NCBI GenBank assembly: GCA_029953675.1
Contig: JAMWBK010000007.1
Coordinates: forward strand, 1-64,000
Length of the DNA stretch: 64,000 nt
Reading direction: 5' to 3'
Source of the DNA: Rhodosorus marinus CCMP1338
Lineage: Eukaryota; Plantae; Rhodophyta
The position numbers were made by a program, and so were the translations under genes. A model generated the notes under the pieces. The model was not told the origin of the DNA. It was given only the letters and a program-made list of their open reading frames with translations, and ran no database searches. Every line of letters begins with the position of its first letter. Positions within the stretch are counted from its first letter, which is position 1. Below are positions 471 to 43,794 of this stretch, piece by piece.

Positions 471-508
471 GCCGATTGCTATCTAGGGAATCACTCACAA
501 CAACCCCG

Positions 509-3646: not shown

Positions 3647-5228
3647 TATGATTGCTCGTTGTCCTGCGCTTCCTGCTGAACCGACGGGTTTGTATTGGCT
3701 GCAGTTTCAGGTTGTAGTCCATTCTCGCTCGGTGTGGGGTCGAGGGGAGCTGGTGTCATTTCTGCATCCGTGCTAGATCCGTTGGCAGACCGGCGCGAGC
3801 GCTTAAGTTGAGGAGGTTCCGGCAAGTTGCACGAGAGTTCCGCATGGGGATTGTCCTCTTCTTCCACATCCTGCGGTACTTGGGATGTTCCACCGGAGTC
3901 ACCCTGAGTGGCAACAGTCCCACAGGCTGCCTGTGCATCGTCCGGAGACGACGAGGCTTCAGCGGCTGCGTTTGGTGCGGCTGCAGTCGTTAGGGGTTCC
4001 GCGCTCTCCCTGGATACCGCAGGTTGCTGTTGAAGGGCTTGTAACTTTTCAAGCCGTTGGTCCAGCATCTCGTGCACTCGGGCGAGAGTTGTAAACGAGA
4101 GATGTCGACGGCTCAGCCGCGCGCGGATGCGTATGATCTGCTCGATCGCTCGTCTCAGCGTTTGAGCCCTGACATCTCCGCCGGCGAGTCGTTGCCGCTC
4201 GTTGAACCCCAGCAGGTTATCCGCCTCTAAACCGTGCCCGGTGTACAGGCTCACCTGTCGATCGGGGTGTCGCATGGTAAAGGATCCGAAAATCCCAGTC
4301 CGGAACACCCCCGGCTGATTGCGCTTTGGAGAAGAGGAATTGCATCAGGGTGGCACACGAGGCTCACGTGTGAAGAGATAAAGTCCAAATGCGCCACATA
4401 CGAGCCGGGAATGCCCAACGCCCGGCAGAGGACCGTAGTGAAGTCAGAAGCAGCCACCTCATCCTGTCGTGGGGGACGGATATTTCGGAGGGTAACAAGC
4501 ACTGGCGTGGTCTCAGGGCCCCAGCTGGCCCCTCCCACTGTGGCGTGTAACTGCTTCAGGGCGGCATGTTGCGTCTGCGGCCCAGGCCTTCGCATGGTGC
4601 GGATGGGTGTCTCTACACCGTTCTCTGGTACTTCTACCGCCGAAACCGCCGCGTAGGTGGGTCTGGGGGTGTCATTCCCAAGGGCCGGGAAAGCCGTCTC
4701 AAACCGGACACCCGCAGGGACACCTGTCCCGACCGGAACTTGATTGAAGCCCGTTCCGGCCGCAAGTTGATTGACCACCGCCGTCGGCCGGTGATGCGCC
4801 GAAGCTCCCGAGGGATTCGAAGTCTGTGCAGAAGCTTGCCACATGTGGGGCTTCTGTGCAAGTTCCGTGAGGCGGCTGGTGACATTATGTATCTCTGTGG
4901 TACTGTTAATTCGCGAGTAGAGATTGAAGACTGCTTTGTAGAAGTTCGCGATGTCCTGCTCCCCAATTCCGAGGGCGTGATAGCACTGATCGTAGCTGCG
5001 AAGTTGGTGGAGGAACGTGTTAGCGGGAGAGGATGACGTAGAAGGCTCTGTCCGACTCCCCTCCTGGCACGGTTCTTCTGGGCGTAAAGTAGTCGCTTGT
5101 AGTCCATCATGTGACCCATGCCCGTCCTCTCGTTCAGCAATTGGAGAGGCAGGCAGCATTCCGCTCATTGCACCGGTATTCTTCGAATTCCCCTCCCCAA
5201 ACGAAGGGGAAGTGCCAGTGTTTGGCAT
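3646..5228 (-). CDS. Family A ORF1 (~525 aa if joined), split by a 1-nt frameshift at the C5 run 4308-4312
   Basis: ORFs 4251-5228 and 3646-4308 join into one protein colinear with the family D homologue (49804-50454: SAIARG-VFHSRVFGSF vs SAISRG-VFRTGIFGSF). Confidence 0.75.
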
Positions 5229-5280: not shown

Positions 5281-5330
5281 TAACCCCAGATAACCCCAGA
5301 CACCCCAGACTAACCCCAGACTAACGTAAC
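5281..5330 (-). repeat. Degenerate telomeric repeats between two family A copies
   Basis: taaccccaga-taaccccaga-caccccagac-taaccccagactaacgtaac. Confidence 0.9.
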
Positions 5331-5486
5331 CGTGAGCTTTATTGGGCAGTCGCCTAATGCGACGTAACACTAAGCCGATTGCTATCTAGGGAATCACTCA
5401 CAACAACCCCGCTACCGGGGTCTCATGCTACGTTCAAAAGAAAAAACAGGAACCAGTGGGTTCTCCAACTGGTCCGCACGTAGAGC
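5331..5486 (-). mobile_element. Family A 5'-truncated copy (complete 3' UTR + end of ORF2)
   Basis: Matches 471-590 and carries the extra ~45 nt of 3' UTR that runs into the telomere repeat. Confidence 0.9.
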
Positions 5487-5496
5487 CCAGCTAAGG

Positions 5497-6148
5497 GTAA
5501 CCCCAGACTAACGTAACCGTAAGCTTTACTGGGCAGCTGCCTACTGCAGCGCAACACTACGTCTAATCCTATCTAGGGAAAAACTTACTGGAACCCCGCT
5601 ACCGGGGTCTCATGCTACGTTCAAAAGAAAAAACAGGTACCAGCGGATTCTCCAGCTGGTCCACGCGCAAAGCGCCTAATGCTATCTCTGCGTTACCTCG
5701 CCATAGTTGCCGGTTTATCTGGGATCTCACGTCTCTCAGCTCCTCACTCCTGTGCAGTAAGTGCTTGCAGCTGTCCCGGAGGAACTCCTGTGCCATTTGC
5801 CCCGTACTACCCCAGACTAACGTAACCCCAGCTCTCTGCAGATTTCGTCATGCCTACGTTGCCACAGTCCAGTTGATGTTGGGCAGTGATGAAACCGTTG
5901 TACCCCAGTCCTTCCGTGTTTACTCCGGCAACTAGTGCACTTCTCGGTGGTCCGCAATCCCGGAATTGGCAGACCCAGCAGTTGTCGAACGTTTACCTGC
6001 ATCTCAACCGCACTCAATTTTTTCGGTGTCAGCGTTGGTATTTCACGTAGCCAGACTCCCGACCCGGATCCCGCGGCAGACCGTCTTCGAGCTCGGTTTT
6101 CAGGGGAGATTCGTGGGTTGGTGACCAGCTTTTGGAATGCGCAATGCT
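5497..6148 (-). mobile_element. Family A subfamily b fragments, interrupted by a telomere unit at 5809-5831
   Basis: Encodes RQLLGLPIPGLRTTEKCTSC...RHDE and AQEFLRDSCKHLL...MRPR; diverged 3' UTR ending in the telomere repeat. Confidence 0.85.
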
Positions 6149-6156
6149 AAGACATT

Positions 6157-6207
6157 AAAAGTTCGTCAGGGGAAATCCGGGAATTGAACCCGGGACCTCT
6201 CGCACCC
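6157..6207 (-). pseudogene. tRNA-Pro 3' half (anticodon loop to discriminator) plus 3' trailer with a T4 run
   Basis: Minus strand GGG-TGCGAG-AGGTC-CCGGG-TTCAATT-CCCGG-ATTTCCC-C then TGACGAAC-TTTT; matches the eukaryotic tRNA-Pro 3' half; 5' half not seen. Confidence 0.85.
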
Positions 6208-6322
6208 CAGACTAACGTAACCCCAGACTAACGTCACCCCAGACTAACGTAACCGTGAGCTTTATTGGGCAGTCGCCTAATGCGACGTAACACTAAGCCG
6301 ATTTACCCCAGACTAACGTAAA
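6204..6322 (-). mobile_element. Three telomere units + 48-nt family A 3' tip + one telomere unit
   Basis: 6255-6302 matches 5331-5378; flanked by CCCCAGACTAACGTAA units. Confidence 0.85.
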
Positions 6323-12625: not shown

Positions 12626-15310
12626 TTGGAAACAATGACTTGGAAAAGAGTTCTGCTGTGGTCGGTTTTGGTATTATGGCTGTCTATTATCTCGGATGCC
12701 GTACCCTGCAGCCAGCCTAAGAGCTCGGTGCTTCCGGAGCATCTCAACACCGTGAGCAGACAGGCGGAATGTGATGGCGTCGGACCGCTGCCGGATTCCG
12801 TGCAACTGGAGAACATCCCAGGGTTCGACTCTAACTGTGTGAAGCTCGGAGACATTTTGACGCTTCCTGCCACTATATCTGAGTATGCCCTGTCTGCTTC
12901 TGGGGACCAGGATTCCAGCGCGATGGAGATTGTGAATGACATCATCGCTCCCGTCCAGGTAGCGATAGAGGTGGCTCTACAGTCACTTACGAATAGGGCG
13001 AATAATAACATCTGCTTTGGCAACTTTGCTGGAGGTGACCTCAAAGCAGAGGCAGACATCGATCAGGATCCTATGATGTACAACAAGTGCAAGGAGCTGC
13101 CGGTTATGTCGTCAGTAGAGTGGTCTGTATTCGCGTTCGCGATCACGACACCGTTCCCTGGATGCGTTACGGAGAAGAGTTCGACAGCAGCGTTCTGCGC
13201 AGCTGTTAGCATATGTCCGGACACCGGAATTCCCTCTGCAACACTCGCCATCAACGGGGCCGCTCTCGAGTGCCTCGGGCAGGACATGTCCGTTTTTAGC
13301 GGAGGAATCACCGCCGGGCTTTCCAAGGTCGCATCTTACGGTCTCGACTTCGTCACCTTTGGATTCTCATTGAGCAACTCGCTGGTCACGAAGGTCTACC
13401 TATACACCGGCCAGGATGACAGAGACTACAAGCTCATCGACTACGAAGTCCACGGCGTCTACCAGGACACCGTCAAGCTGAAGCTCAAGCTGGAGAAGTG
13501 GAACCTGCCCAAGGTGCTCGACCTTTCTGGATCACAGAAGCGAATCGTCTCAGTGAAGGGGTTGGAAAATGTTGAGTTTGAGGACACCGTCAAGGCCTTC
13601 GAGCCCGGCACCGACTCCGACGGCTGGGACACAGACATGCTCGACCTGCTCGAGTCGATCACAGACGTGACGCTCCAGGCGGCTCTGAGCATACAGCTCA
13701 AGATGAAGTTCAAGTTCTCTGCCATCCCGGGGCTGGGAAAGATTCTTCCGGATTCCAACTCGATGACTCTCGGAGACGTGGATATGTTCTTCACCACCGG
13801 AACAGTGACCCCGCCAGGAGACGACTACAAGGATATGGTCCTCAAACCCGGAGTCTACGCCTTTGCTGGAAGCAATGCTGTTGCCTCCGTTCTTGTGGGA
13901 ATTCTGGAGTATGCGCTTCAATTCGTGGGAAGCATCCTGGACCTGTTCGATTGGCTTCCATTCAAGATCGACGCCTCAGACCTGATCCCGAACTTCGACG
14001 TCGGAGCATCGGACAGCTTCGCCTTTGGATTTACGGCGAACACCGACTGTACTGCAATCATGCTCAACGTTCCGTTAATATTCGACTTTCTGGGCTATGT
14101 CACCCTTGAATGCAAGACCGACTACTCGTCGTTCAGGTGCTCGGTTACCACTGAGTTCAACAGCAAGTTCTTCGAAGCCATCGGCGAGGCGATCGAGGAG
14201 GGAGTCCTGTGGATCATCAATGAGACCGATGAGTTCTTCAATAACATTGGAAACACGATCGGAGCTGCCTTCGAGGACGCCGTTGAGGGTGCCGTCAGTG
14301 CCTTCTCCGAGGATAACCTGAAGGCTACCGCGAAGCTGATCTCAAAGGGGGCGCTCAGTATTGCAAACGATATCAAGGACGAGCTCGAGGGCTGGGGCAA
14401 GTGGTGCGAAACCGCATTTGACGATTTTGGTGATGCAGTTGCTGATCTTGCAGCCGGCGCTGTCAACGATATCTGCAGTGTTGGAAAGTCTCTCGTGGAT
14501 GAGGCCGAGGAGGCCCTCAACGATCTTTCAGATGCGCTCGAGGATGCAGCGGAGTATGTCGGAAATTTGTTTAGCTGCTCTCAAGGGAGTATCATCCAAG
14601 CCATCGCGGGATGCTCTGATTGCTGTGAGGGGATGGAAGCGGCCGTCAAGGTCCTGGAGGAGGTTGGAAACGACATCGAGGATGCCATCGTAGACATTAT
14701 GGATGGGCTCACCAGCGTCATGGACGATTTCGCAAACGGGGGCTTCGACGAATCTCAAAGCTACGAAAAAACCACAATAGACGAAAAAGATACGTACGGC
14801 TGCAACAAGGTGAAGGTCGAGAAGGTAACAAAGGAGTACTTCTGGTTTGTCGAAGTCAGCGAGAGTAGAAAAACAGTCGCAATAATTTCGGACGAGGATT
14901 GTGTCACCGCCGCGCTTGAACAAGCCAAAATCGTTGTCGAAAAGTACAACTCTACCGCCATCGCCCAAGATGCATTCCAGACAATCTCCGATGAAAACAA
15001 GGACGCTGTGTTCGGCGCTTCGATCACAGCAGACGATCTCTTGGAATTTGCCGACCTCAGTTGCTCTAGTGAACTAGAACGAGATCAGGTGGAGTCCGGA
15101 ACCCAGATCATGCCAGTTACCGTCACCTGCAGCGCCAATTCTATTGGCTCGGATGGATCCTTCACGGGAGACGTTGTCACGATCTCTCAAACCGGGAACG
15201 TCGATATGTCAAACGCGACGAGCAGGGGAGAAGCCGTTTCCCAGCTTTGGGATGATGTCAAGGCCCAGCTTGCGGAGGAGATCACCCCGACCGTGGCTCG
15301 CACACGGTAA
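12626..15310 (+). CDS. Secreted acidic protein of unknown function, 894 aa
   Basis: Long intronless ORF; signal peptide (KRVLLWSVLVLWLSIISDA); Cys-rich N-terminal region; amphipathic D/E/A-rich helical C-terminal half. Confidence 0.85.
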   Translation: METMTWKRVLLWSVLVLWLSIISDAVPCSQPKSSVLPEHLNTVSRQAECDGVGPLPDSVQLENIPGFDSNCVKLGDILTLPATISEYALSASGDQDSSAMEIVNDIIAPVQVAIEVALQSLTNRANNNICFGNFAGGDLKAEADIDQDPMMYNKCKELPVMSSVEWSVFAFAITTPFPGCVTEKSSTAAFCAAVSICPDTGIPSATLAINGAALECLGQDMSVFSGGITAGLSKVASYGLDFVTFGFSLSNSLVTKVYLYTGQDDRDYKLIDYEVHGVYQDTVKLKLKLEKWNLPKVLDLSGSQKRIVSVKGLENVEFEDTVKAFEPGTDSDGWDTDMLDLLESITDVTLQAALSIQLKMKFKFSAIPGLGKILPDSNSMTLGDVDMFFTTGTVTPPGDDYKDMVLKPGVYAFAGSNAVASVLVGILEYALQFVGSILDLFDWLPFKIDASDLIPNFDVGASDSFAFGFTANTDCTAIMLNVPLIFDFLGYVTLECKTDYSSFRCSVTTEFNSKFFEAIGEAIEEGVLWIINETDEFFNNIGNTIGAAFEDAVEGAVSAFSEDNLKATAKLISKGALSIANDIKDELEGWGKWCETAFDDFGDAVADLAAGAVNDICSVGKSLVDEAEEALNDLSDALEDAAEYVGNLFSCSQGSIIQAIAGCSDCCEGMEAAVKVLEEVGNDIEDAIVDIMDGLTSVMDDFANGGFDESQSYEKTTIDEKDTYGCNKVKVEKVTKEYFWFVEVSESRKTVAIISDEDCVTAALEQAKIVVEKYNSTAIAQDAFQTISDENKDAVFGASITADDLLEFADLSCSSELERDQVESGTQIMPVTVTCSANSIGSDGSFTGDVVTISQTGNVDMSNATSRGEAVSQLWDDVKAQLAEEITPTVARTR

Positions 15311-19138: not shown

Positions 19139-20545
19139 ATGAAGGTTCTATTGATTGTGGTGTTCATTTTCTGTGCGCTTTGTGCGCTCAGTCTGCCAGT
19201 TGAGTTCCAGTCGGCTATGCGTCGTTTCGGTGCTAGTTCCAGGCAGCAGACAGCTTCGACCTGCGGTGCACAGCTGGCCAACCGGAGTATATTGATAAAC
19301 AACTTCAATGCAGGCGGGGGGCTGACAACAGATATTCCGCCAGATATAGATCAGTATACTAACCTTCGGTTTCGCCTTTGGTCGAACACCGCAAAAAAAA
19401 CTGGCCTTCTGCGGATCGAGAGCGAGTTTCAGTCTCATTCCCCGCTGGAACTGAGACGAATGCGCCTCTACGTTGGCCCAGGCAGTTGTGCCGACTTTCG
19501 GCGTGACGAGATCGCTAAGATCGCGAAAACGAGGCACTTCAAGAAGGGAACAGATATTATGTCAATGAGGTTCAATCTTGGTGACAACGTCAGCGCTCCG
19601 GATACTCCCCGCGCGTGCTGCAACCTATGTGCGTATGTACAGCCTATTATCCACGATGCGAGGAATGGCGAACGGGTTCATATCCTGAACGAAAAGATTG
19701 AGCAATCCACTAATGAAAGAAAAACCTTCTGCAGAAAAGGAAGAAAGGATGACTTTCTCTGCGACCTCCCAGACATCTGTATCAACGTTATCCGAGGAAC
19801 GGAAGGCGACGATGTCCTCATCGGTACGCCTTACGATGACCATATCCTAGGACTCGGAGGCAATGACAAAATCATCAGTGGGGATGGAGCGGACTATGTT
19901 AACGGCGGTGATGGTCATGATTTCATCAGAGGTGGTCCTGGAAGGGATGAAATATTGGGTTCGGATGGAAACGACAATCTGAAAGGAGGTGGTGAGTACG
20001 ACAAGCTTTTTGGAGGGGACGGAGATGACTATATTGGGGATTCTTCAATGGAGGAGGACACAAGAACGAATCCGACTGATTTTCAGTTTTGGCACAACCT
20101 AGCTTATGGAGGGAACGGCGACGATACGATAGTTAGTGGAGACGGTCGCGATCTGATGAAGGGCGACGCAGGGAATGATACGATCATTGGGGGTCGCGGG
20201 GATGATATAATGCGGGGGAATGAAGGAAACGACTTATTGATGGGAGGTGACGGAGATGATTCCATGGAGGGTTCCGAAGGTGCAGACCTGATGTACGGCG
20301 GTGATGGCGATGATTCCATTGAGGGTAGAGAAGGTGCTGACCGGATCTACGGCGGTGATGGCGATGATTATTTAGCTGGTTACCGGGGTCCAAAGTATTC
20401 TGGCTTTTATGACACCGACCCAGACAAGGTTTATGGAGAGAATGGCGATGATTATCTCATTGGCGATGATCAGGATCTACTCGATGGAGGCGAGGGTGAC
20501 GACAAGTACTACACACATGATAGGAAAGAACTTATACCCCAATAA
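19139..20545 (+). CDS. Secreted protein with hemolysin-type (RTX) calcium-binding nonapeptide repeats
   Basis: Signal peptide MKVLLIVVFIFCALCALS (ATG 19139); C-terminal half has many GGxGxDxxx repeats. Confidence 0.88.
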   Translation: MKVLLIVVFIFCALCALSLPVEFQSAMRRFGASSRQQTASTCGAQLANRSILINNFNAGGGLTTDIPPDIDQYTNLRFRLWSNTAKKTGLLRIESEFQSHSPLELRRMRLYVGPGSCADFRRDEIAKIAKTRHFKKGTDIMSMRFNLGDNVSAPDTPRACCNLCAYVQPIIHDARNGERVHILNEKIEQSTNERKTFCRKGRKDDFLCDLPDICINVIRGTEGDDVLIGTPYDDHILGLGGNDKIISGDGADYVNGGDGHDFIRGGPGRDEILGSDGNDNLKGGGEYDKLFGGDGDDYIGDSSMEEDTRTNPTDFQFWHNLAYGGNGDDTIVSGDGRDLMKGDAGNDTIIGGRGDDIMRGNEGNDLLMGGDGDDSMEGSEGADLMYGGDGDDSIEGREGADRIYGGDGDDYLAGYRGPKYSGFYDTDPDKVYGENGDDYLIGDDQDLLDGGEGDDKYYTHDRKELIPQ

Positions 20546-20880
20546 AGTTCTTTCCTATCATGTGTGTAGTTCCAAAAAAAATAAAAAATGATCCGCATAA
20601 TATCAAATATTACGATATTATACTGGTTAAACTGTGGATTAGTAGTTTTCTACCACCGCACTAGAATCCCCTAGTTTGAGCGATGATTACGTCTATATTT
20701 GAGCCGACGACAGTAAAGTTACGAAATCGACATTCTTTCTGGGGTCGACTTGATGAGATTTGCAAATAAACCCAGTAAAACCACCACCAGCAAATAAAAC
20801 CATCTAGTTCTTAGTTCCTTTTCAGCCTTGCGTAGCGCTTCGGGCTATGCGAATAAATCGAGAATATCATCACAACGCGA

Positions 20881-20931
20881 CACTGATACGAAAGATGCTA
20901 CACTTGATCTTAGCCAAAAGGCCGAGAAGAT
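20881..20931 (-). ncRNA. U2 snRNA 5' fragment (3'-truncated copy or pseudogene)
   Basis: Minus strand ATCTTCTCGGCCTTTTGGCTAAGATCAAGTGTAGCATCTTTCGTATCAGTG matches the conserved U2 5' end; no convincing later stems; a family C 3' end at 20803-20850 lies adjacent in the opposite orientation. Confidence 0.85.
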
Positions 20932-21232
20932 GGGAGATTAGCATGCGCGGGAAAGCCTGGAGGGGGGCGTACAAAACTAGCACTGAAGAAGGTGGTCTAC
21001 CCTTGTACTGAGTTCCAGTTATTGATCATGCAATCTTTTTTTTTTAATTGCAAATGGATACTGAACCTTCGAGATTGGGCAGGTTGAGGGAATGTCCACG
21101 TGCACTCAAGGGCCCTCCCCCCTAGGCTCGTTTCGACGTTGGTCTTCTTTATGACTGTCAATACAATAGTGTGCTAGTGAGTACCAAACCCAGTTGAGTA
21201 CCTCTACAAATCGTTTATATGTGTTTCTGCAG

Positions 21233-22978
21233 CTATGCTTCGACAGGGGTGAACGTGTAGGTGCACGTAGCGTTCTGGTAGAACGCATCGCAGGACACCT
21301 GGTAGGGCTCTGTTGGCGGGTAAAACGGCATCGCCTCAATGACCGTCCCTCTGATCGCGGCGTACAGTAGCGCGGAGATTCCGCCAGAAATAGGGAGTGT
21401 GATGATCCACGAGAGCCCGATCTTTCCAATCAGACCCCAGTTGCTCTTCTTAAACCCGTCAGGCTCGTAGAGCCCGATCGCGATGACAGCCCCGATCAGA
21501 CAGTGGGTGCTGGAAACTGGGATCCCGACGTACGAGGCGATGAGGACTGTGAAAGCAACAGCAAGCTGGGCACTCTGCCCTCTGAGAGGAGTAACGACCG
21601 TCAGGTTCTCACCGATGGTCTTCATGACCTTGGCTCCGAAGAAGTACAGACCGACGATGATGAACACGCAGCAGTAGAAGAGCGCCCAGTAGACCGGCTG
21701 GGGGGTCTCCACCAACGCACCGCTGTTCAAGGTCTGGTAGATAGCCTGAAGGGTTCCAGCAGCATTGGAGATATCATTAGCTCCCGCGGCGAATGACATG
21801 TAGCAGGCTGACAGAACTTGACCGCCTGCGAAGCGCTTTTCGATCTGGAAGTCCCACAGATCGTCCGGCTTGTACAGGCTCACGTCCTTCTTGTTACCTT
21901 CACCACCGATGAACTTGGTGAGACCCTTGAAGAACTTTGTAATCGGACTCTTCTTCCTGCTCTGCTTGACTCTGTCGATAGTCACGGTCCTTCCCATTCT
22001 GGACAACTTCGCTTCGTCAGTCACCGTGCGCATGGAGGACAAGCGTCCGATCTTAGCTCCGTTCTCCTCGTCCAGAGACAGCTCCTCGAGTAGGTTGTCC
22101 TCGATGAGTTCGTCAAGGAATTGTTGGTTCTCTTCCTCGACGAAGCCTCCGCTTAGATCCATTCTATCCAGCTTCCGGTTGGTTAAGCCGATCGCCCAGA
22201 GGTATCCGACGATTCCCACAAGCGCACCACACCCAACGGCAATACCCGCGGCCGGACCGTACCAGTAGTCGTCGTAGAGCCCATGTCGGACTGTCGTGAT
22301 CACGAACATGACTGTCGTGAAAGTGACCAGGAACCAGACGGCAGCGGTGTAGATGTGCTGCCTGTGAAGTGCCACTGGCCTCCATTCGGGGTCGCTCTCG
22401 TGAGTATCCCTGAATGGAATGCAGATCCAGTACTTGGCAGTGAGGTAGAACGCCGATGCGAAAACTCCAGCCAGCAACGGTGAGATGACCCATGAGATCG
22501 CGATCTTTCCAACCCCCGGCCACCATTGGATTCCACTAGCTCCCAGCTCAACGAGACCGAAGCCAATGGTCGCTCCGACAATGGCGTGCGTTGTGCTGAC
22601 CGGCATGGACAGCCATGTAGCCACTGACACAAACATGCCAGCTGCAAGAGCGGAGGTGAGCATACCGAGCATGTAAAGAGAGGGAATTTCCTGGAAGTCA
22701 GTCCAACTGACGATGCCTTTCCCCACTGTCTTCGTAACCTGACCTCCGAGGGCCATTGCACCGAGTGTGATGAAGACGGAGGCCAGGATACAAGCCATCC
22801 TCACGGTAAGCACTCTCGATCCTACGGAAGTTCCGAACAGGTTTCCAACGTCGTTCGCTCCCATGGCCGCGGACTGCCACATTGTGGCAAACAAAGCCAC
22901 GGCGAAGATCCATGTGAATGGCCCCAAGACCTGGGCCGCCACATTGGGCGCAATAGTCACCACCTCTGTCGCAGACAT
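21233..22978 (-). CDS. PiT/PHO4-family inorganic phosphate transporter (~581 aa)
   Basis: GANDVGN and GANDISN signatures, PVSTTH and PVSSTH motifs, multiple TM helices; first ATG at 22978 (the ORF track starts at an upstream TTG). Confidence 0.93.
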   Translation of the reverse strand: MSATEVVTIAPNVAAQVLGPFTWIFAVALFATMWQSAAMGANDVGNLFGTSVGSRVLTVRMACILASVFITLGAMALGGQVTKTVGKGIVSWTDFQEIPSLYMLGMLTSALAAGMFVSVATWLSMPVSTTHAIVGATIGFGLVELGASGIQWWPGVGKIAISWVISPLLAGVFASAFYLTAKYWICIPFRDTHESDPEWRPVALHRQHIYTAAVWFLVTFTTVMFVITTVRHGLYDDYWYGPAAGIAVGCGALVGIVGYLWAIGLTNRKLDRMDLSGGFVEEENQQFLDELIEDNLLEELSLDEENGAKIGRLSSMRTVTDEAKLSRMGRTVTIDRVKQSRKKSPITKFFKGLTKFIGGEGNKKDVSLYKPDDLWDFQIEKRFAGGQVLSACYMSFAAGANDISNAAGTLQAIYQTLNSGALVETPQPVYWALFYCCVFIIVGLYFFGAKVMKTIGENLTVVTPLRGQSAQLAVAFTVLIASYVGIPVSSTHCLIGAVIAIGLYEPDGFKKSNWGLIGKIGLSWIITLPISGGISALLYAAIRGTVIEAMPFYPPTEPYQVSCDAFYQNATCTYTFTPVEA

Positions 22979-24672
22979 CGTTCCCCTTATCTCAGAAGTT
23001 GCCCAAGCGCGTCTGCTGCAAACACTACGCGGTCTTCTCTTCGGCAGATGAGTTTCTCGCGAAACGTAAACACATGTATCTGTATGCTTACTATGATCAA
23101 GAGCGTTTGATTTCTTTGCATGGGGGAATCGTATTCCTCCTCCTTCCGAGACCGCGTTATCCTCCAACTATATGTTGCTTTCCGTTCGCTCCCATCGAGC
23201 CATTCATCGAAAAGAACTAGACTTCTATTGGTTTCAGCCTCCAGCGTTTGATGTGGGGAATCCCAACAGTTTACACCAGCACTAAGCGTGCCAACCTTTT
23301 TTTCTTCCCGCTATTCATGAGCTCCTCCTCACGATAATACGAACTTCCCTGCGAAGGAGCCCATCCAGAATCCATCCAGGCCAACTCCAATCGGGAAGTC
23401 TGATTCCTAGCATCACTGGCAGCGCAACTTCCAACATTCCGAAGGAACCGTCCTCTGCTGTAAATTACAAAATTCATTCAATGACGAAGACAGCAAAAAA
23501 ACAAACAAAAAGGGAACAAGCCAGAACCCAAATACGTTCTAAAAAAATATAAAATTTGGGAAATCCGGCTACCAACTAGATTCTGGTTCTCACTCACTCC
23601 ATCGCTCCGCTTGCCTCCAAAAAACTAACCCGGGAAGCTCCTCGTGCCTCTCAAGCTTCTAGAGTTACCCGATTCCTCCATCCGACCATTGTCAGGCCCT
23701 TACCCTGCGTCCCTCTCAAGTACAGTTTTAATAATAAACATGGCATGTTTCATTCTAGATTCGGAGTGGAAAAAGGGGGGGGGGGGGTTTCGCGAAAACT
23801 GGTACCGTCAGCCCATGGGACGGTGCCAGACGCTCTCGACCCCATAGGACAGTTGCCCCCATATACATAGCGTTTTTGCGATGAATTTGGACTCGGGCAT
23901 TTAGGCAATATTTTCTAAAATTTATCAAAGATATATATATAGCAGAAATAGTAAATCGACACCCCATCAACGATTCTTTGGGGGAGGCCGCAGGGGGGGG
24001 GCCTCTGCGCAACCTTAGGCAAACGGCGGACATTCTCGAGTTGTTTTGGGCTGATAGATAGTGTAGGTTTCGCACTGGCTGCGTTGTGTGTTCCGCGAAC
24101 GACCCCAGGACGTCTGGATCGCCGCCTCCTCACGGAGACCCTATGTGGGGCTCGAATGATTGCTTCATTTGTTTGACGCGCGTCAATCCGCGTCTTTGTT
24201 TCTTCTCGTTTCTTAGAGTACGTCAGCCTCTGAATAAAAGACGAAACGGCGGGACGTTTCGCGACCATGTTTACAGAAGAGAAAACTTCGGTTGGTTAAC
24301 CTTTTATACGATGGGCCTCGGCGACGATCGCTTGGGCGGAGACGGAGGAGCTCGGGAACAAAATTTCTATTTATAGATAATCTAACGGATCCTCTGGGTG
24401 GAAAAAAACCAAGGTCGAAACGGGATTCTATAAATAGAACTTCGATTTCGATGGGGGACTCGTGGAAAGATTCCCGCGGGCGAGCAGAATACCAGAAATA
24501 CGGTATGAATATATATTTAACGATACTATGGAACAATATAAACTCACTTTTGGGGAAAAAAACAAACCATGTTTAGAAACGAGATGTCACGACAGTAACA
24601 GATCCTCGCGCTTGGAGTCGGGCGGGGCAAAAAAAAAGAAGTGGTGGCTCTTTTTTGACGCCAACATAGGGA

Positions 24673-24711
24673 GCCGGCGTAGCTCAGTCGGCTAGAGCGC
24701 CAGGCTTTTAA
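24673..24711 (+). pseudogene. tRNA-Lys(UUU) 5' half
   Basis: GCCGGCG-TA-GCTC-AGTCGGCTA-GAGC-G-CCAGG-CT-TTT-AA: acceptor 5' strand, D-arm, anticodon stem 5' strand and loop; 3' half not seen. Confidence 0.88.
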
Positions 24712-25413
24712 TTCGGCTTACATCAGCCCCCTTGGCCGTACGAGATGGGTTCGTCGTGCCCTCTCTGCTCTCAGACTGAAGACAACGCAGATTTTGGCGC
24801 CCACCTGCTCGCTAGTTGCCCGGCGGTGAAAGGTGCTCGAACCCGCCGCCATACACGGATCTTGAACCTGTTATACCGGGAACTTCGGCCTATAGTCCGG
24901 CAAGCCGGTCTGGAAATCGAACGTGAGAAACCTTTACCCGTCGCGGACTTTCAAAATGATGAACGCCGTGTAGCCGACCTGGTGATCACCTGTGACGACA
25001 GCCGCCGTACCACATACGTTGATCTTGCTGTTCCTAACCCTCAAGCTAGTCGTTATCTCCCGGCTGCGGGGGAGCGCCGTGGATCTGCCGCCGCCAGCAT
25101 GAGACGCCGCAAAGAGATCAAATACGCGGGGGCTTTGTCTTCCCCTGGTGTTCGTGCTTCGGCACTAGCACATCGCTTGGTACCCCTGATCATTGAGTGC
25201 TTTGGGTTCATGGACTCTGTTGGTTCTCGCTGGCTTCGGGAGTTGTTCCGCGAACGCCCTGACCGTCTTCAATCGTTGTTTACCCGCTTAAGTTTCCTGC
25301 TGTGGCGCATGAATGCCGCTTTGATGTTGGAGGCGCGAGTACTTCGCCGCGCTTAGTCTTTTTTTCCCCTCGGGGTTTTTTTTTTTCAGCCTCCGATTAA
25401 ACCATTCGTTCGT
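24712..25413 (+). mobile_element. Family B 5'-truncated copy fused to the tRNA-Lys half, 10-bp TSD AACATAGGGA
   Basis: ORF 24745-25356 (knuckle + RLE); TSD at 24663-24672 and 25415-25424. Confidence 0.92.
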
Positions 25414-25439
25414 AAACATAGGGACATCTGAAAATCATC

Positions 25440-26045
25440 TGAGGAGGTTTTTTTTTTGGTTTTTGGGGCGGTTGTCTGGAGTGTTTCGACTTCGGCGTAT
25501 TTTTGGGGTGCCAAGGTGTGTTTTGTTCCCTCCGGGGAGGGCGCTGCTTTTCAGGGTTTCCTTCCCCCGGCGTGTTTCTCCGCCGGGAAGGGGGGTGGGG
25601 GAGGGGGTTGGTGTTCTGGTGCGCTTCTTCCCGCCCCGCGGTTTGGTTGGGGAATTTCTTGGTTTTCTCGGTGGGATACACGCCTCTATTCGAGGGGGTT
25701 TTTGTGGTAAAACTTCTCTCTGCCGCACTCTTGTGTATGGCGGCAGTTTCCGCACTCGTTGCTGCGGCTGGCGCAGCCGAAACGCTCGTTGAACTGCGCG
25801 TGGGCTCCTTCAGTACAAGTGCCGCCCTTGCCAATTGCGACGAAGTGTTGTCGCATGCTCTGATCTCGAAACTAACCAGTCTCCTCCTCGTTGCTTCCCA
25901 GGAGCACCGCTTGCCTCTGCTCAAGACGTACCTGGAGAACTTCCTGGCTAACGCCGGTGCCTGCGTGCCACCCGCCACCGATACTCCCGCAGGGAGCTCT
26001 GTCCCGCGCCTTTTCCCCCAGCCGCGTGGAGCGTGCCACACAGCT
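25440..26045 (+). mobile_element. Probable 5' UTR + ORF1 N-terminus of a B/C-type element
   Basis: G/T-rich leader like the family C 5' UTR; HALISKLTSLLLVASQEHRLPLL resembles family C ORF1 RALISAVTSLITAASDRGVLPQL. Confidence 0.55.
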
Positions 26046-27712: not shown

Positions 27713-30700
27713 ATGAACATTAAAACAGTCGTGTTATGGGGACTGTGCATCCTTTTTGGGCTGCTTTTCAGTTGCCCAGTAAAAGCAGAGGACTCCGAAG
27801 TTTGTGAAGGCTGGGGATTGTCGAGTACGGCATGCTTGATGGCACAAGATGTGGCATCTGGCTACGCCGATGGTGAGGAAGGAGGTGTTTTCAACGTGTA
27901 CGCACCGTTTTTCTACGTCATCGATTTTTCGGAGGACGAGACGTCTTCGACGAAGCTTTTCGGGTCGGATCAAGATGTCGTTGTATACGGATACTACATT
28001 CTTATCAAAGGAGCCGCGGGGGCGGTTGCGAAGATGCAGGGGACGAACCTCTCGATCATCGGGAGCGTCGTGGAGATAAAGACGGATGGAGACTTCGAAG
28101 TGAACCTCACGGCAAATGAACTCACCTCCCTTCCTCCTGAGGCTCCGGAACAGCCGGATGTGCCAGGTCCTCCGAAGCAACAATCACACACCGATAGTCC
28201 GAATGGCGAGATGGGCAAATGGGGCTTCACGGGTTACAAAGGGCACCAGGGCAGGAGCGGTGGGAACTTCACACTTATCGCCAAGAGCCTGGATGTTGCG
28301 AGCTTGTACTCGGGCGGCTTCAAAATGACTGTGACGACAAATGGAGGTGAAGGTGGAACGGGAGGAATAGGTGGACAGGGTGGCAACGCTCAGCAGGGCG
28401 TGGACGGTATGCCCTGTGGGCTTAAGGACGACTGGGTAGCAAGCCGGTGCTCAGCCTGGTGGTGTAATCAGTGTCCGACTGATGCAGCATGGAATGGCGA
28501 TAAAAAGATTTGTCAGTACTACAACCCCGGCGCGCCGCAGCAGGGAGGGCCCGGAGGCACGGGTGGTACCGGAGGAGACGGTGGAAAGGCTGGAGAGGTG
28601 AAGATCTACTCAAATGTTGTTGTGGGTGGCGAGAACGTTGAGTTAACTAGTGAAGATGCCAGCGCGCTCTTTATTGGCCAATCGATCTCAGGCTCGGGGG
28701 GGACCGGTGGGCGTGGAGGTGACGGGGGAAGCGGGGGCACGCTTACCAACAGATGCGGGGTTCGAACATGGACCAAGAACATCATCCTGAACGTCAACTA
28801 CTATGAGTCATTTGATTTCCGATATCCTCCGCAAGGCGACCAAGGGTGGTCCGGTGGCTGGGGAGGCGGAGGGTCGATCTCCCATTTGCCACTTGAGAAG
28901 TCATTCCGGGGGGGTGGTTGGCGCTGAAGTGGAGGATTGGGATGACAACGACTTTGAGCAACCCCAGGAGTATGCGTACGTAGACTACATACAGCCACCT
29001 GCCTACATTGACTTCGGTCTCAGCCTTTCGAAGAAAATGTTGAGGGTCATGTTCTTCAATGACAACATCGACCAAAACCAAAACGCCTACGCGATGATCA
29101 TGGCCTCAACGTCGGATATGCTCTATAATGCGCAGCGTGCTGCCAACCAGACTGCCGATGACACCGTCAGGGAAAAGTATACCTCCCTCGCTGGCCAGGC
29201 TATCTCGATCATCCAGGCTGCGAACCAGCTCACAACCTCGACGACGAGGCCCGTGAACGAGGTCAGCGTGATGAGCTTCGAGTATCTTCTGGACTACCTT
29301 GAGGACAGACGTGAACTCGGAGCCGAGCTGGAGATCTACTACGACATTTTCAGAGACTCAATCGATGACGCTGCGGCCTCAATGGAGATGCTCACCAACG
29401 CGACTAGCAACGCACAGAACGGCATCTTGGCTCAGCGGTCGAAGCAGGAGGAGCTCCTGGTGCAGATGCAGGAGGTAAATCGCTCTATCCTCACCGCAGA
29501 GGAGAACATTAGGCAATACTACTGGGAGATGGACCAGCAGCAGGTCGCTATGGACGAGTGCTGGGAGAAGGTGAAAGCTCAGATGGTGTTCGAGACGGTA
29601 ATGGAGTTTACGAGCTTCGCTATGAGCGTCTTCGACCTGGGATTCTCGGTGACACGAGTGCTGTCAAAGGCTGGGGGCTGGTCGAGCAATTCGAAGTCCG
29701 ATGCGGCAAAAACCGCGTTCAAGGGTATCGACGGCTTCAGCGGGTTTAAGTTTAAGGCGATAACCGACCTTACTAAGGAGATCCACAGCTTCTTTCCTTC
29801 CGCGGGAGATTCAGCGGACTGGTCCGCGTACACTCCAAGCGTGGACGCAATCATGGAAGACATTGGAAATCTAGCTTCCGATACCCTAGCAGATCCACTC
29901 GACAGTCTCTACGAGGCCGATGACTACGAAGCGGCTATGGCAATCGCTGCGCAGTTGAACTCGATGCAGGACAACATGAGCTCGGCGATGGTGGCAATGG
30001 ATAGGAAGGAGCTAATGGACTACGTCAGCTTCATGAAGAAAGACTGCTACTCGTCGGCAAGCGGTTTTCTCAGGGCTTTCGATACGGCAGACATGTGGGT
30101 TGAGCAGAAGAATGATCTGATCGCGCTTTACACGAGCTACATGGCTTACCTAAAGCAGGTTACGGCGAGGAAGCTCTACCTTATGAACGTCGTTGACGCT
30201 CTGAACATAGAGATCAAGAACAACATGATCAATCCCGCTGCCCCGGCGGTCAAGATCGCCCACGAAAGCAACTACAACTCACTCGTAGACGACTTCCACA
30301 GGGATCTCGAGTTGGTTTTTACCTCGAGGGAGTACCTAATGATGGGACTTTCCACTACCGGGCTGAACACGATCACCCTCGCCGACTGCGAGTGGGAGGC
30401 GTCCTTACTGGACATCTCCAAGAGCTTGTACTTTCAGTGCGCCTCAGAGTCGATTCTTAAGCTTCGGCAGTCGTTGAAAAATTGGTATGAGAACATCTAC
30501 GAGCTCCACCAGTTGATGGAATACGGCGCCTACTGGGGCCCCGTGGAGCTTAACGCCGAGACGATCGGAGAAGAAAACTGGGCGGAATTCGTGAAAACAG
30601 GATCGATGAACTTCTGCATAGATCCATCAAATAAGGCGTTCAATAGCCTACCTGGGCTGGTATCTCCCCTCTTCTTCCCGCTGATCTCTTTGGACAGTAT

Positions 30701-31637
30701 ATATGCCGTGTTCGACGGCGTCAGCGATAGCGCCGAGCCCGTTTTGGATATCACCCACATGGCCAGCTCCGGTATTGTGCGGGTCGCTGAGGGAGACGAC
30801 GAAGAATCGATGTATAACGTGAGGAAGTTCTCGCACACCAACAGGCGACGTACTTTTATGTACTACGGCAGCGCCCCGGATGATGAGGAGCAGAGTTTGG
30901 CTGATTGGATGGCGTCGAACTTCATTCGACAGCACGCCATATTTTCTGAAGAAAATTACCTCGATATCAGCCCGTTCAGCAACTACCGGCTGGATACGAG
31001 GTTGATAGACATCGAAGGTATCGCAAATATTCGGCTCTATTTCACCGGAAGCTATGTGAGGTCAAACTTTGCCGACCCTCTTGACGATAAAATACCGATC
31101 ATGTGCAACTCGTTCTCGCCGGAAGAAACGAGCACTCCCTCGCCGACTCCGGTATACGAAGCGACGCCAACCTCGACTCCCTCGCCGATGCCGTCAGTCG
31201 AAGCGACGCCAACCTCAGCTCCGGACGAAGAGGGAACGAGCGCTTCCGCCCTGTTCGAGGAATTCAGGGAAAAATCTGCTTTCGTGCCCGCTGAAACCAT
31301 GTTGAGTGAAATAGGATCGACTGCTTGCGCTTCGTACAGCTCTTCTGTAAAAAGAGTTGTGTCAGAATCCTCAGTAGGTCAAGTCAGCGCGTGCGAGATC
31401 GCCATCGGAGCAAACGATGGAGTTTATCTGCCAAAGATGATGAAGATGGATTGGGATTGGTCCGATAAGCCGAAGAGGACGCAGTGGAAGAGACCGGAAG
31501 GCGTTGCAGTGAGCTCCAACAAGAAATCTGTAATCTTCAACCTCTCAACCGCCGTCCTCAGTGAAAATATGAGGGAGGCCAAAGTTACCGTCGTCTCCGA
31601 GAGCTGCCCAGCAAGTATCAAGGTAGTATCTTGCTAG
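27713..31637 (+). CDS. Large secreted protein (~1300 aa if joined): Gly-rich GGxGG N-terminal region + helical body, frameshifted at G7 28908-28914
   Basis: 404-aa ORF with signal peptide overlaps a 944-aa ORF lacking a native start; removing one G gives ...KSFRG-VVGAEVEDW... Confidence 0.75.
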
Positions 31638-35104: not shown

Positions 35105-37873
35105 GTGTTCCTTTTCTCCTAGTGCTTCCTCAGCTTTTAGGTCTTCTCGACAGAATCGGGCGCGTCACGCGGTGGCAGGCGGTGATCTGCGGCGGGCAGC
35201 CGGGATCCTCCAGCAGCGGCAACCTGTGGTTCCATACTCCGATGATCTTTCTTCACCGCTCCGTTTGCTCTTTCCCTCGGAAGGCTCCCCTTGGGACTCC
35301 TCGTTTGAATCAGTGTTGGAAGAGTACCGCGCCGCGCCACATCCCAGTGCGCGGTTAGTGGTCAATCTGGAGGCGGTGCGTGAGTTGGTTCATGATGCTC
35401 CGAAGGGCCGTTCCCCAGGGCCCTCGGGGCTGCGGGTGGAATATCTCCGTTTCTTAAGTGATGAAGGTTTGAAGGCGTTGGCGTGGGTGGTCGAAGCGCT
35501 TGTGAATGGTGATCCCCTGTGTGAGTGTGCGTGGTTCTTGGTCGGGCGTTCGCAAATGTGTCTGCTTTCGAAGCCCGGCCACACGGCCTCGAGCCCTGCT
35601 ATTCGCCCTATTGGCCTGGTTGAGGTGGTCCGCAAATTGGCGGCGCGATGGTTAGTGAAAATCCTGGTTCCCGAATCCCGCCGTTCCTTTGGGCACGTGC
35701 AGTTAGGTGTGGGCTATCGTGGTGGCTGTGAGTTGTTGTCTGTTTTACTCCGTTCGGAAATGGCGTACTCCCCAGATTCTGGGCTCCTCTCTGTAGATTT
35801 TACCAATGCGTTCAACCGCGTCTCTCGTCCGGCTCTCATGCACGTGGTGCGCGAAGTCTTCCCTGCAGGCTTTCCCTTTGTTAGTAGACTTTATTCTCCG
35901 CTTGGTCGTGGGGCTACCTATGACACCCTTGGCGCTTCCTCACACACGTTTGCGGCGCGCACAGAGGTACAACAGGGTGATCCCTTGTCCCCTTTCCTAC
36001 ATGCCTGTGGACTACAACTCGTCTTGCTTTGTCTTCGCTCCGAATTCCCGCAGGTTCGTACGGTTGCATACCACGACGACGTGTGCCTCCTGGGGCCCCC
36101 TGATACTCTAGCGCTCGCTTATGATCGTCTTCGCTCCTTGGCTTCGCGGGTTGACTTGGAGGTTAATCATCACAAATCGTTCTACTGGGGAGGTGTAGCT
36201 GCACAAGAGCAGCAGGTACCTGCGTCGTTCCAGGATATTTGGAGACCGGATGGTTTTGTCCACTTAGGCATCCCCTACGGGTCGCCGTCCTTCGTTGAAG
36301 GCGAGTTCCTGCAGCTCCTCGGTAAGCACAGACAGCTGGTTGCAGAGCTTCGACGGCTACCTCCGGGCTTTCTCCAGTGCTCGTTGTTGCTGTTTCGGTA
36401 TTGTTGCAGTCAGCGGTTAACCTATTGGCTTCGCTCACTTCCAACTCATTGGGGCCGGTGGTTGGCCACTCGTGCGGATGCTGAAAGTTTCCGTGACCTG
36501 GGGTATTTTCTCGATGAAGAGCTGAGCGCTCTGTCGCGACCCACCTGTGATGTTGTGCGCGCCCAGGTAGGCCTCCCATTGCGATGGGGGGACTGGGCCT
36601 CTGCAACCACAGGTCCAACCTGCAGCCGCAGTAGGGGCCTGGGGAACCGCACTTCCCACTTTGAGCAGCTTGGGTATCTCGAAGTTCCGCAATTTGATGG
36701 TGAGCCTCCCGGTGTCTTGCTTCCCAGCGTACCGGAAAGCGCCCAAGACTTGTTTCTGGAGCTCCAAACCGCCCTGAATTCCTGTACTAGTCTCCCCGAA
36801 ACCGTTCAACCCCGTCTTCCTGACTGGCGAGCTGTACTTGACCGCTCTCGAGGCTCTGCCCCGGTGATTCGTCCTGCGCCTGAACCTGTTCTAGGGGAGA
36901 TTGACCCAGTGGTTGCCGCAGAAGAAGAAGTTCCAGTTGATCCTCCTGATGATTCCCAGCGCGCTGGGAGCCGAGCTCAAGCACGCACGGATGCGCTGCA
37001 AAATATCCTTTCTTGGGACTTGCACCGTGCTGCATATGGCCGACTCCTCGCGCAGATGGTCTCATCTTCTCGCGCTCGCGCCCGCCTACGTAGTCTTGGA
37101 GGGGTTATTAGCTCTCAGTGGCTCATGACAGTACCAGCGTTTCCGCCACTCACACTGTCGGATTTCGAAGTGCGTACTTCACTGCGCTTATACCTCGGCT
37201 TACATCAGCCCCCTTGGCCGTACGAGATGGGTTCGTCGTGCCCTCTCTGCTCTCAGACTGAAGACAACGCAGATTTTGGCGCCCACCTGCTCGCTAGTTG
37301 CCCGGCGGTGAAAGGTGCTCGAACCCGCCGCCACACACGGATCTTGAACCTGTTATACCGGGAACTTCGGCCTATAGTCCGGCAAGCCGGTCTGGAAATC
37401 GAACGTGAGAAACCTTTACCCGTCGCGGACTTTCAAAATGATGAACGCCGTGTAACCGACCTGGTGATCACCTTTGACGACAGCCGCCGTACCACATACG
37501 TTGATCTTGCTGTTCCTAACCCTCAAGCTAGTCGTTATCTCCCGGCTGCGGGGGAGCCCCGAGGATCTGCCGCCGCCAGCATGAGACGCCGCAAAGAGAT
37601 CAAATACGCGGGGGCTTTGTCTTCCCCTGGTGTTCGTGCTTCGGCACTAGCACATCGCTTGGTACCCCTGATCATTGAGTGCTTTGGGTTCATGGACTCT
37701 GTTGGTTCTCGCTGGCTTCGGGAGTTGTTCCGCGAACGCCCTGACCGTCTTCAATCGTTGTTTACCCGCTTAAGTTTCCTGCTGTGGCGCATGAATGCCG
37801 CTTTGATGTTGGAGGCGCGAGTACTTCGCCGCACTTAGTCTTTTTTTCCCTTCGGGGTTTTTTTTTTCAGCCT
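35105..37873 (+). mobile_element. Family B, longest copy (RT + RLE, 5'-truncated)
   Basis: SPGPSG, RPIG, VDFTNAFN, QQGDPLSP, YHDD, CPLC...HLLASC, RLE; short out-of-frame stretch near 36590-36660; B tail. Confidence 0.9.
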
Positions 37874-37924
37874 CCGATTAAACCATTCGTTCGCTTTCTG
37901 TTGCGGAGCACCTCTTTTACTCCC

Positions 37925-43144: not shown

Positions 43145-43794
43145 GCCTTTCGTGCTTGTTGTTTTACTTCCTTAGTTCCGTTAGGTGAAGACGTCTCTCT
43201 GAAAATGTTCAATATACATGTTATGACAATATATACATATATTGCTCGCGATGACATAGCGTTGGTTTTGTCCCTAAAGTCCGGGCTATTCTCTTCCCCT
43301 TCTTCGAATACAACCCGAGATGTTTCACACCGCAGTCCCCGCAACCGGGTCAGCTTGTTGAGTTGAATGATGCTAAATTTTTGTCAGCAAGTGTTAAACA
43401 ATTGAACGTGGGTCTGGTCTTTTTTGGCATTTTCATATCTGCGAAAGCTCCATTGGAATTTCTGTGGCAGCCTGTTATAGTAAAAACCCGCGTGTACGGG
43501 GCGTCATGAACTCGGGCATGGCGTCCTCCAAACTTTGCCGCATTCTGATGAAAATAATTGCAAGCAGGACGCTGGTGCGGACATGCCAATATCTGTCTGT
43601 TCACGCTCGCTACTGGTGACTAGGACTCTGTTAGTTTCTATTCATCAACCAAACGACGAAAAGAGAAACAACAAAAAAAACGCTCTAATCCTCTTGGAAT
43701 TCCTCCTTCAAATCTACACAACTCCTTGTCGCCTACAAAGCCACACGAAAAGGGATGGACCCAAATTCTTTCAAGGCTAACTCTGATGGCTCAC

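Follow-up and report, generated by a model that had tools for sequence, protein, structure and literature searches.

The window analysed here is the first 64,000 nt (positions 1-64000) of contig JAMWBK010000007.1 in GCA_029953675.1, a nuclear assembly built from long reads for the red alga Rhodosorus marinus CCMP1338 (PMC10250338). Within it lies an insertion in which the 5′ half of a lysine transfer RNA, tRNA-Lys(UUU), stands directly before a truncated retrotransposon of the type without long terminal repeats (non-LTR), denoted family B, with a single target-site duplication around the two. The tRNA half was very probably co-inserted with the element as RNA-derived sequence. For the step that made the join, we lean toward a template jump by the reverse transcriptase of the element. 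The parts of the insertion, which share one strand and orientation, are as follows.

24663-24672, + strand: upstream copy of the target-site duplication, AACATAGGGA, abutting G1 of the tRNA half.
24673-24711, + strand: tRNA-Lys(UUU) 5′ half, Sprinzl positions 1-38, 39 nt with position 20a, from Rfam alignment, comparison with metagenome locus L060, and ARAGORN.
24712, + strand: junction T that B does not template, either an untemplated addition or U39 of the tRNA; five other B copies read C.
24713-25412, + strand: 5′-truncated family B copy, the last ~700 bp of the 4549-bp element, with its own (ATTC/GTTC)n-type tail.
24745-25356, + strand: intact remnant open reading frame (ORF) of 203 amino acids, with the CCHC zinc knuckle and restriction-like endonuclease region of ORF2.
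25413-25414, + strand: the dinucleotide TA, placed after the B tail and before the downstream duplication; a variant of the tail or an untemplated addition.
25415-25424, + strand: downstream copy of the target-site duplication, AACATAGGGA, 10 bp.

A preliminary description of this stretch, made from its letters alone, had claimed that a 10-bp direct repeat brackets both the tRNA half and the element, and its coordinates are correct. AACATAGGGA occurs only twice in the window when both strands are searched (0.04 occurrences expected), first directly upstream of G1 and again beginning 2 nt past the B tail. By our own estimate, the chance of a 10-nt exact repeat so placed is ~4 x 111 x 4^-10 = 4e-4, assuming a repeat 0-3 nt from the 3′ end of the element and at most ~110 nt upstream of its 5′ boundary. 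One target-site duplication encloses the half and the element. These are two unrelated RNA-derived segments set head to tail, the 3′ one being a truncated long interspersed nuclear element (LINE) with its own 3′ end. The 5′ one starts at a mature RNA 5′ end and lacks gene flank, with G1 directly after the duplication.

Homology to family B begins at 24713 (TCGGCTTACATC...) and extends to the element's own 3′ end at 25412, and the junction between the two parts reads GGCTTTTAATTCGGCTTACATC. At this site, all five other B copies that cover it read ...TATACC|TCGG, with C in place of the T at 24712. The B fragment is 97.5-98.4% identical to long B copies and 100% identical over 538 nt to the window copy at 44649-45186; family B has therefore been active recently. 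The flanks of the insertion are unique in the window, which holds no paralogous empty site.

The tRNA half, GCCGGCGTAGCTCAGTCGGCTAGAGCGCCAGGCTTTTAA, is found once in the window. Its acceptor strand is 7 nt long and is followed by U8, A9, a D arm of GCTC/AGTCGGCTA/GAGC, G26, CCAGG as the 5′ strand of the anticodon stem, and a CUUUUAA loop, so that it runs from Sprinzl G1 to A38 of tRNA-Lys(UUU). The Rfam tRNA model matches it with 19.7 bits (E = 0.067 for a 201-nt query against all 4227 families), and positions 8-38 show 2 mismatches in 31 against a full-length tRNA-Lys(UUU) gene at L060. The identification first made, a tRNA-Lys(UUU) half extending from G1 to the end of the anticodon loop, is borne out by the alignment and refined to 39 nt (counting 20a) that end at A38 and are followed by one extra T. 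ARAGORN found no complete tRNA in the window.

Tandem tRNA and retrotransposon sequence would also result if a tRNA-Lys gene had been the target, with B entering the anticodon loop, the 3′ half deleted at integration, and the 10-bp repeat coincidental. Elements with restriction-like endonucleases aimed at small-RNA genes do exist, such as Utopia in U2 small nuclear RNA (snRNA) genes (PMC4640811), and small-RNA genes occur among the retrotransposons of this window (a tRNA 3′ part broken at 38/39, at 6169-6203, and a U2-like sequence at 20694-20933). The placement of the 10-mer, upstream of G1 and right after the B tail, nevertheless counts against a coincidence, and the sequence 3′ of the insert, read directly, is not tRNA-like.

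A tRNA-gene target also predicts a remaining 3′ half, which the preliminary description had proposed to look for beside related insertions. The matching 3′ half (CCTGG...T arm...CGCCGGC) is absent from the window and from six further R. marinus loci (L101-L106, 134 kb) that were reached through annotated proteins and bring the sampled sequence to 198 kb overall. The pattern GGTTCRANNCC....GCCGGC gave 0 matches at up to 2 mismatches, CGCCGGC sites are without T arms, and the sole T-arm hairpin in the 198 kb, at 6177-6193, comes from a different tRNA. Neither a tRNA gene nor a second copy of the half was found in L101-L106. Rfam scans of the window and L101-L103 at E <= 5 returned only the U2-like match and are too insensitive for half tRNAs.

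Other insertions of the same family speak to the same question. Seven other B copies have direct repeats of 7-14 bp that start at the 3′ boundary of the element and end at or near its 5′ boundary, as listed here.

Window 44620-45186, - strand: duplication TTAAATGAACG, 11 bp.
Window 44155-44321, + strand: duplication GCTAAGAGC, 9 bp.
Window 43793-44098, + strand: duplication GATG[G/C]CTC, 8 bp, one mismatch.
L101 7295-7510, - strand: duplication ATTTATTGAAA, 11 bp.
L102 7276-8012, + strand: duplication GTTTTGT, 7-8 bp.
L106 15484-15592, + strand: duplication TCGATAATAGTT, 12 bp.
L106 7245-8103, - strand: duplication GATCTTCGCTTTCA, 14 bp.

The 10-bp repeat of the chimera is within this size range. 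All of these duplications differ and lie at unrelated, non-tRNA sites, so family B is not specific for tRNA genes. In the window and the sampled loci, tRNA sequence flanks no other B copy; a small-RNA-gene-targeting LINE of the Utopia kind was accordingly rejected as an identity for B. The hexamer TAGGGA was considered as a target motif and dismissed, since it lies downstream of two B copies (24663 and 9026) and none of the other eleven has it. In L106, a match of 11 nt to the half, GCCAGGCTTTT, stands 65 nt upstream of a B copy; it falls outside the clean 12-bp duplication of that copy and is treated as chance.

The half is thus part of the insert, because the duplicated 10-mer lies upstream of G1, the downstream flank is not tRNA-like, the 3′ half is missing from the 198 kb, and the other B copies have no tRNA flank. 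This agrees with the preliminary description, which had assigned the half to the insert; it lies within the duplication together with truncated B, in the same orientation and with an exact start at G1. The reading of a tRNA gene as the target is close to refuted.

The nature of family B bears on how the join was made. The full-length element of 4549 bp is defined by two copies that share both ends (L102 16875-21423 and L103 4866-9431); the longest copy in the window, 35105-37893, is also truncated. It encodes an upstream ORF1-like frame of 458 amino acids and a long ORF2, and its 3′ end reads ...GATTAAACCATTCGTTCG, followed by a variable (ATTC/GTTC)n tail. ORF2 matches Pfam RVT_1 (E = 6.8e-10), and the ADLVI, YVDLAV, and KEIKY motifs can be read directly in the translation. 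The best matches among solved structures are R2 proteins, with E = 5e-12 for the reverse transcriptase region and E = 2.5e-8 for the alignment of B residues 826-904 to R2 residues 944-1025. The zinc-knuckle stretch CPxC...H....CP..GAR.RRH also aligns to R2, and within the remnant ORF of the chimera the stretch HxxxxCPAVxGARxRRH aligns to residues 950-983 of the R2 protein 9nl2_A. Pfam gave no Exo_endo_phos match, and hence no apurinic-endonuclease-type (APE) endonuclease, in any B frame, and found no zinc-finger or Myb domain.

Judged from these sequence features, B is an R2-like non-LTR retrotransposon with a reverse transcriptase, a C-terminal CCHC knuckle, and a putative PD-(D/E)XK-type endonuclease, and without an APE domain. 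It is not R2 proper because its insertions sit at unrelated sites; R2 in the strict sense was rejected on the eight insertions at unrelated sequences, the ORF1-like frame, and the lack of a zinc-finger or Myb domain. In three independent B copies the truncation points fall within a span of ~40 nt, at window 24713, window 40931 (- strand), and L102 7276. These truncations cluster at element positions ~3805, ~3828, and 3844 of 4549, just upstream of the zinc-knuckle codons, and may mark a pause or cleavage hotspot or be due to chance. Exact-protein look-ups of the reading frames of family B and of a further family, A, gave no match because the elements are not annotated as genes.

With the half assigned to the insert, the next consideration is whether it came from RNA or DNA. 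The half extends from an RNase P-processed 5′ end as far as the last base of the anticodon loop, which argues for an RNA fragment as donor and against gene DNA or a read-through transcript. Permuted tRNA genes are known from the red alga Cyanidioschyzon merolae. A functional, permuted, or split tRNA gene was rejected here, as no 3′ half lies downstream or upstream in the sequence sampled.

Capture of DNA at the 5′ junction of B by end joining would draw on a nuclear tRNA gene or on organellar DNA of the nuclear mitochondrial (NUMT) type. NUMTs are reported to be abundant in R. marinus (PMC10250338), and the D-loop AGTCGGCTAGAGC is common to many prokaryote-type tRNA-Lys genes. Yet a random fragment would not have G1 and the last anticodon-loop base as its exact ends. 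When metagenomes were scanned for the combined D-arm and anticodon-loop pattern, 99 loci came up, all of them prokaryote-type tRNA-Lys(UUU), and none (0/99) has the CCAGG anticodon stem. The GCC... acceptor start and the 62% G+C of the half fit a cytosolic eukaryotic tRNA-Lys. Such DNA-level filler is very improbable.

A transcript of a chimeric master gene is a further candidate for the source of the insert. A B fragment lodged in a tRNA-Lys gene elsewhere would give polymerase III transcripts that B proteins retrotranspose in trans, the whole amounting to a nascent short interspersed nuclear element (SINE). The architecture is suggestive, as a tRNA head with a LINE tail is how tRNA-derived SINEs are built (PMC4494074), and the half keeps the A box TAGCTCAGTCGG. 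Transcription of the unit is harder to accommodate. The B box is lacking, with GGTTCGTCGTG at 24748 as the sole approximation and its key A58 and C61 positions wrong, and the T4 run at 24792-24795 and T7 run at 25362-25368 would end polymerase III transcription before the retained 3′ end of B. A primary transcript would also carry a 5′ leader, while the insert begins at G1, and the 198 kb hold one copy. A master gene of this kind appears highly unlikely, and the same single copy, missing B box, and T runs (24792 and 25362) led us to reject a tRNA-derived SINE as the identity of the insertion.

The remaining route starts from two RNAs, and the mechanism we propose is target-primed. The B endonuclease would nick the target at ...GACGCC|AACATAGGGA|CATCTG..., and the nick would prime reverse transcription from the 3′ tail of the B RNA. 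After ~700 nt the B RNA template would end or be abandoned at the U corresponding to 24713, where the reverse transcriptase would add one or two untemplated bases. Synthesis would then resume on the 3′ end of a free cytosolic tRNA-Lys(UUU) 5′ fragment that ends in the anticodon loop, at A37 or A38. The fragment would be copied to its RNase P-processed G1, the complementary DNA (cDNA) joined to the upstream target end, and staggered cleavage of the second strand would give the 10-bp duplication. The empty site before insertion would read ...TTTTTTGACGCCAACATAGGGACATCTGAAAATC....

This scheme draws on the behavior of R2, whose reverse transcriptase produces continuous cDNA across separate templates in jumps that need untemplated addition (PMC8857657). 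The preliminary description had taken jumping by R2-type reverse transcriptases as established, and this holds, both for untemplated addition and for template jumps (PMC8857657), with B being R2-like. The copy at L101 7295-7510 has 9 extra nt, TCCCTTTTA, between its 11-bp duplication and the start of the element, so the chimera is not the only B copy with foreign bases at its 5′ junction. Both this filler and the extra T at 24712 fit the template-jump route. The last six bases of TCCCTTTTA equal anticodon-loop positions 32-37 of tRNA-Lys(UUU) while the preceding bases do not match the half, and the likeness is probably chance. The tRNA loop region, GGCTTTTAAT, agrees at 6/11 positions with the B sequence in whose place it stands, CGCTTATACC; this possible microhomology lies upstream of the switch point, where it has no simple role in the mechanism, and was likewise treated as chance.

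The donor may be the 5′ exon of a tRNA in splicing or a half made by a nuclease. Nuclear tRNA genes of red algae often bear introns (63% in C. merolae; PMC13578239).

The two RNAs could instead have been joined before reverse transcription. A tRNA-Lys 5′ fragment with a cyclic phosphate would be sealed by a tRNA ligase of the RtcB or Trl1 type to B RNA cut so as to leave a 5′-OH, and the product, with the 3′ end of B retained, retrotransposed as one template. This route accounts without added assumptions for the end in the anticodon loop and for the sense orientation of both parts; tRNA ligases act naturally on the 5′ exons and halves of tRNAs. The three clustered B truncations (24713; 40931; L102 7276) could mark a preferred region of RNA cleavage. 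In the case of U6 RNA and LINE-1 (L1), RtcB joins U6 RNA with a 2′,3′-cyclic phosphate to 5′-OH L1 RNA and is at least partly the source of U6/L1, whose chimeric RNAs occur independently of retrotransposition (PMC6789731). Less easily explained is the junction T, which is templated by no sampled B copy; a clean join predicts no extra base unless the T is U39. Folding around the B breakpoint showed no bulge-helix-bulge-like or unusually stable structure (z-scores -0.1 to -0.2), and the breakpoint thus lacks a special RNA fold. Ligation is possible but the less likely of the two routes, the extra T at the junction being the reason why a jump is favoured over it.

Several considerations weigh against a template jump. 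If the tRNA-Lys(UUU) has U39, in a G31-U39 pair, no extra base is left and a clean ligation fits equally. A jump also needs a B RNA that ended or was released internally, which the scheme leaves unexplained. Halves and 5′ exons of tRNAs end in a 2′,3′-cyclic phosphate, the substrate end of such ligases. Template jumping has been demonstrated biochemically for R2 of Bombyx, a distant relative, in vitro (PMC8857657), and U6/LINE-1 chimeras, the classic example of a jump, form by RtcB ligation before retrotransposition (PMC6789731). Finally, the case is a single instance, the 198 kb sampled having yielded no other tRNA-Lys/B chimera. We infer both the cellular origin of the half and the preference for a jump over RNA ligation. 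The earlier proposal that the reverse transcriptase jumped onto a free tRNA 5′ half is consequently upheld as regards RNA-derived co-insertion, and the jump is the likelier of two candidate joining steps.

Insertions that combine a LINE with a small RNA are familiar, above all U6/L1. The R. marinus insertion is an event of this kind from another LINE clade and another kingdom, with the half in sense. Like U6/LINE-1, it has a small polymerase III RNA that starts at its mature 5′ end and lies in sense before a 5′-truncated LINE, within one duplication. It differs in that U6 is full length with a natural cyclic-phosphate 3′ end and the RNA here is a cleaved half. RtcB ligation has experimental support for U6/L1 (PMC6789731). 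As a precedent for jumping, which the preliminary description had made of them, the U6-L1 chimeras are real, yet RtcB ligation that precedes retrotransposition accounts for at least part of them (PMC6789731).

The closest likeness in composition is to chimeras of tRNA halves and LINE-1 described from primates in 2025, comprising 21 loci with 9-19-bp duplications and tRNA region 1-37, mostly antisense (PMC11838501; bioRxiv 10.1101/2025.02.02.635956). Their breakpoints resemble the cleavage sites of tRNA halves, and the authors conclude single-event co-insertion and propose twin priming (PMC11838501). In both organisms about half a tRNA and a 5′-truncated LINE share one target-site duplication. 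The primate element is an APE-type LINE-1 with mostly antisense tRNA, whereas the R. marinus element is R2-like with the half in sense. This combination calls for a template jump or a prior RNA ligation, and twin priming was rejected because both parts are on the same strand.

With R2 of Bombyx mori, B shares the reverse transcriptase and the C-terminal zinc-knuckle and endonuclease regions, and the extra T and 9-nt filler fit R2 jumping. In contrast to R2, which inserts only in 28S ribosomal DNA and has one ORF, B is found at many unrelated sites and has an ORF1-like frame and a short tandem-repeat tail. The insertion resembles tRNA-derived SINEs in its tRNA-derived 5′ end and the 3′ end of a partner LINE, and departs from them in being a single copy with half a tRNA, no B box, and internal T runs. 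MINE of the fungus Magnaporthe grisea offers non-mammalian examples in which LINE cDNA was continued on other cellular RNAs, giving chimeras of two or three parts (PMC2104539). Their 5′ partner is a non-coding RNA whose function is unknown, not a tRNA half, and the LINE belongs to another clade.

The chimera provides in-genome evidence that in a non-animal an R2-like retrotransposon fuses its own cDNA in vivo with a small RNA of the cell. R2-like elements are in use for genome engineering and small-RNA sequencing owing to their template jumping. A transient RNA, a 38-39-nt 5′ fragment of tRNA-Lys(UUU) with a mature 5′ end, has been fixed in DNA, which is indirect evidence that a red alga has tRNA-Lys halves or 5′ exons and that these come into contact with retrotransposon particles. 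The order of the parts is the one from which tRNA-derived SINEs are thought to arise, and fragments of this sort can be mis-annotated as tRNA pseudogenes or tRNA-targeted insertions. The value of the case is limited in that a single locus is concerned, LINE-1 already provides described events of this kind, and the mechanism is read from anatomy and the biochemistry of distant relatives.

A possible second case lies 18 kb away. On the minus strand, 6203-6169 reads GCGAG AGGTC CCGGG-TTCAATT-CCCGG ATTTCCC C, corresponding to tRNA positions 39-73. It is preceded by three telomere units (6252-6204, - strand) and followed by 22 nt that include TTTT (6168-6147, - strand), after which comes a 5′-truncated, telomere-associated R2-like element (6146-5829, - strand) whose homology to a relative in L101 starts at 6146. 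A telomere unit at 5831-5809 follows this copy. The acceptor sequence ATTTCCC marks the piece at 6147-6203 as a different tRNA from the Lys half. As in the Lys chimera, the piece lies in sense directly before a 5′-truncated element, with its break at the 3′ edge of the anticodon loop. It could be the captured 3′ part of a pre-tRNA, or a tRNA gene struck by an upstream element ending in telomere units.

It is a speculative and rather doubtful generalization that the R2-like retrotransposons of R. marinus recurrently capture intermediates of tRNA processing whose break is at the 3′ edge of the anticodon loop. If true, it would mean that tRNA cleavage and splicing, with their endonuclease and ligase, are physically coupled to LINE ribonucleoproteins, and it would show the step at which the heads of tRNA-derived SINEs are born.

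The U2 snRNA-like sequence is at 20694-20933 (- strand) and scores 44.1 bits with Rfam, against a gathering score of 46; its first 60 nt are canonical. A stretch of ~55-65 nt between stem-loop IIa and the Sm site is 85-87% identical, in antisense, to the end of the family A 3′ untranslated region. This reflects an element fragment lodged within a U2 gene or, alternatively, a past capture of antisense U2 sequence by family A.

The window as a whole is a subtelomere dense in non-LTR retrotransposon copies, the majority of them 5′-truncated. About 360 nt downstream of the chimera, at 25788-25973 (+ strand), a relic encodes 62 amino acids that match residues 57-118 of B ORF1 at 63% identity, so that the chimera came to lie beside the 5′ region of an older related element. 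The window starts with ~29 copies of the 16-nt repeat ACCCCAGACTAACGTA (1-470; G strand TACGTTAGTCTGGGGT), presumed to be the telomere, for which the unit is unusually long. Lone telomere units lie among element fragments up to 8.5 kb inward, at 5314, 5501, 5810, 6205-6252, 6306, 7362 (- strand), 7392, 7647, and 8568. A third R2-like family occupies 470-3800 (- strand), with an ORF of 1045 amino acids at 509-3646 that matches RVT_1, and its 3′ end abuts the telomere repeats directly. Its fragments at 5369-5486, 5556-5778, and 5826-6146 show one telomere unit after each truncated copy. The arrangement looks like an array of telomere-repeat-associated retrotransposons with element 3′ ends toward the chromosome end.

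A phosphate transporter is encoded at 21233-22978, and an exact match to its protein fixes the position of the window in the contig. Two long open frames of 404 amino acids (glycine-rich, with a signal-like start) and 944 amino acids lie at 27713-31637 (+ strand), where the public annotation has no called gene; the 944-amino-acid frame is without a Pfam match. An annotated gene at 19139-20545 (+ strand) encodes a secreted-looking protein with eight stretches of RTX calcium-binding repeats. Among the best 120 of its 2113 database relatives, the sole eukaryotic one is an R. marinus paralog and every other relative with a named source is bacterial or metagenomic, which suggests horizontal acquisition of the gene. 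At 12635-15310 (+ strand) is a protein of 891 amino acids with no Pfam domains, a member of a Rhodosorus-specific family with at least 7 paralogs, several of which are near contig ends and adjoin retrotransposon copies.

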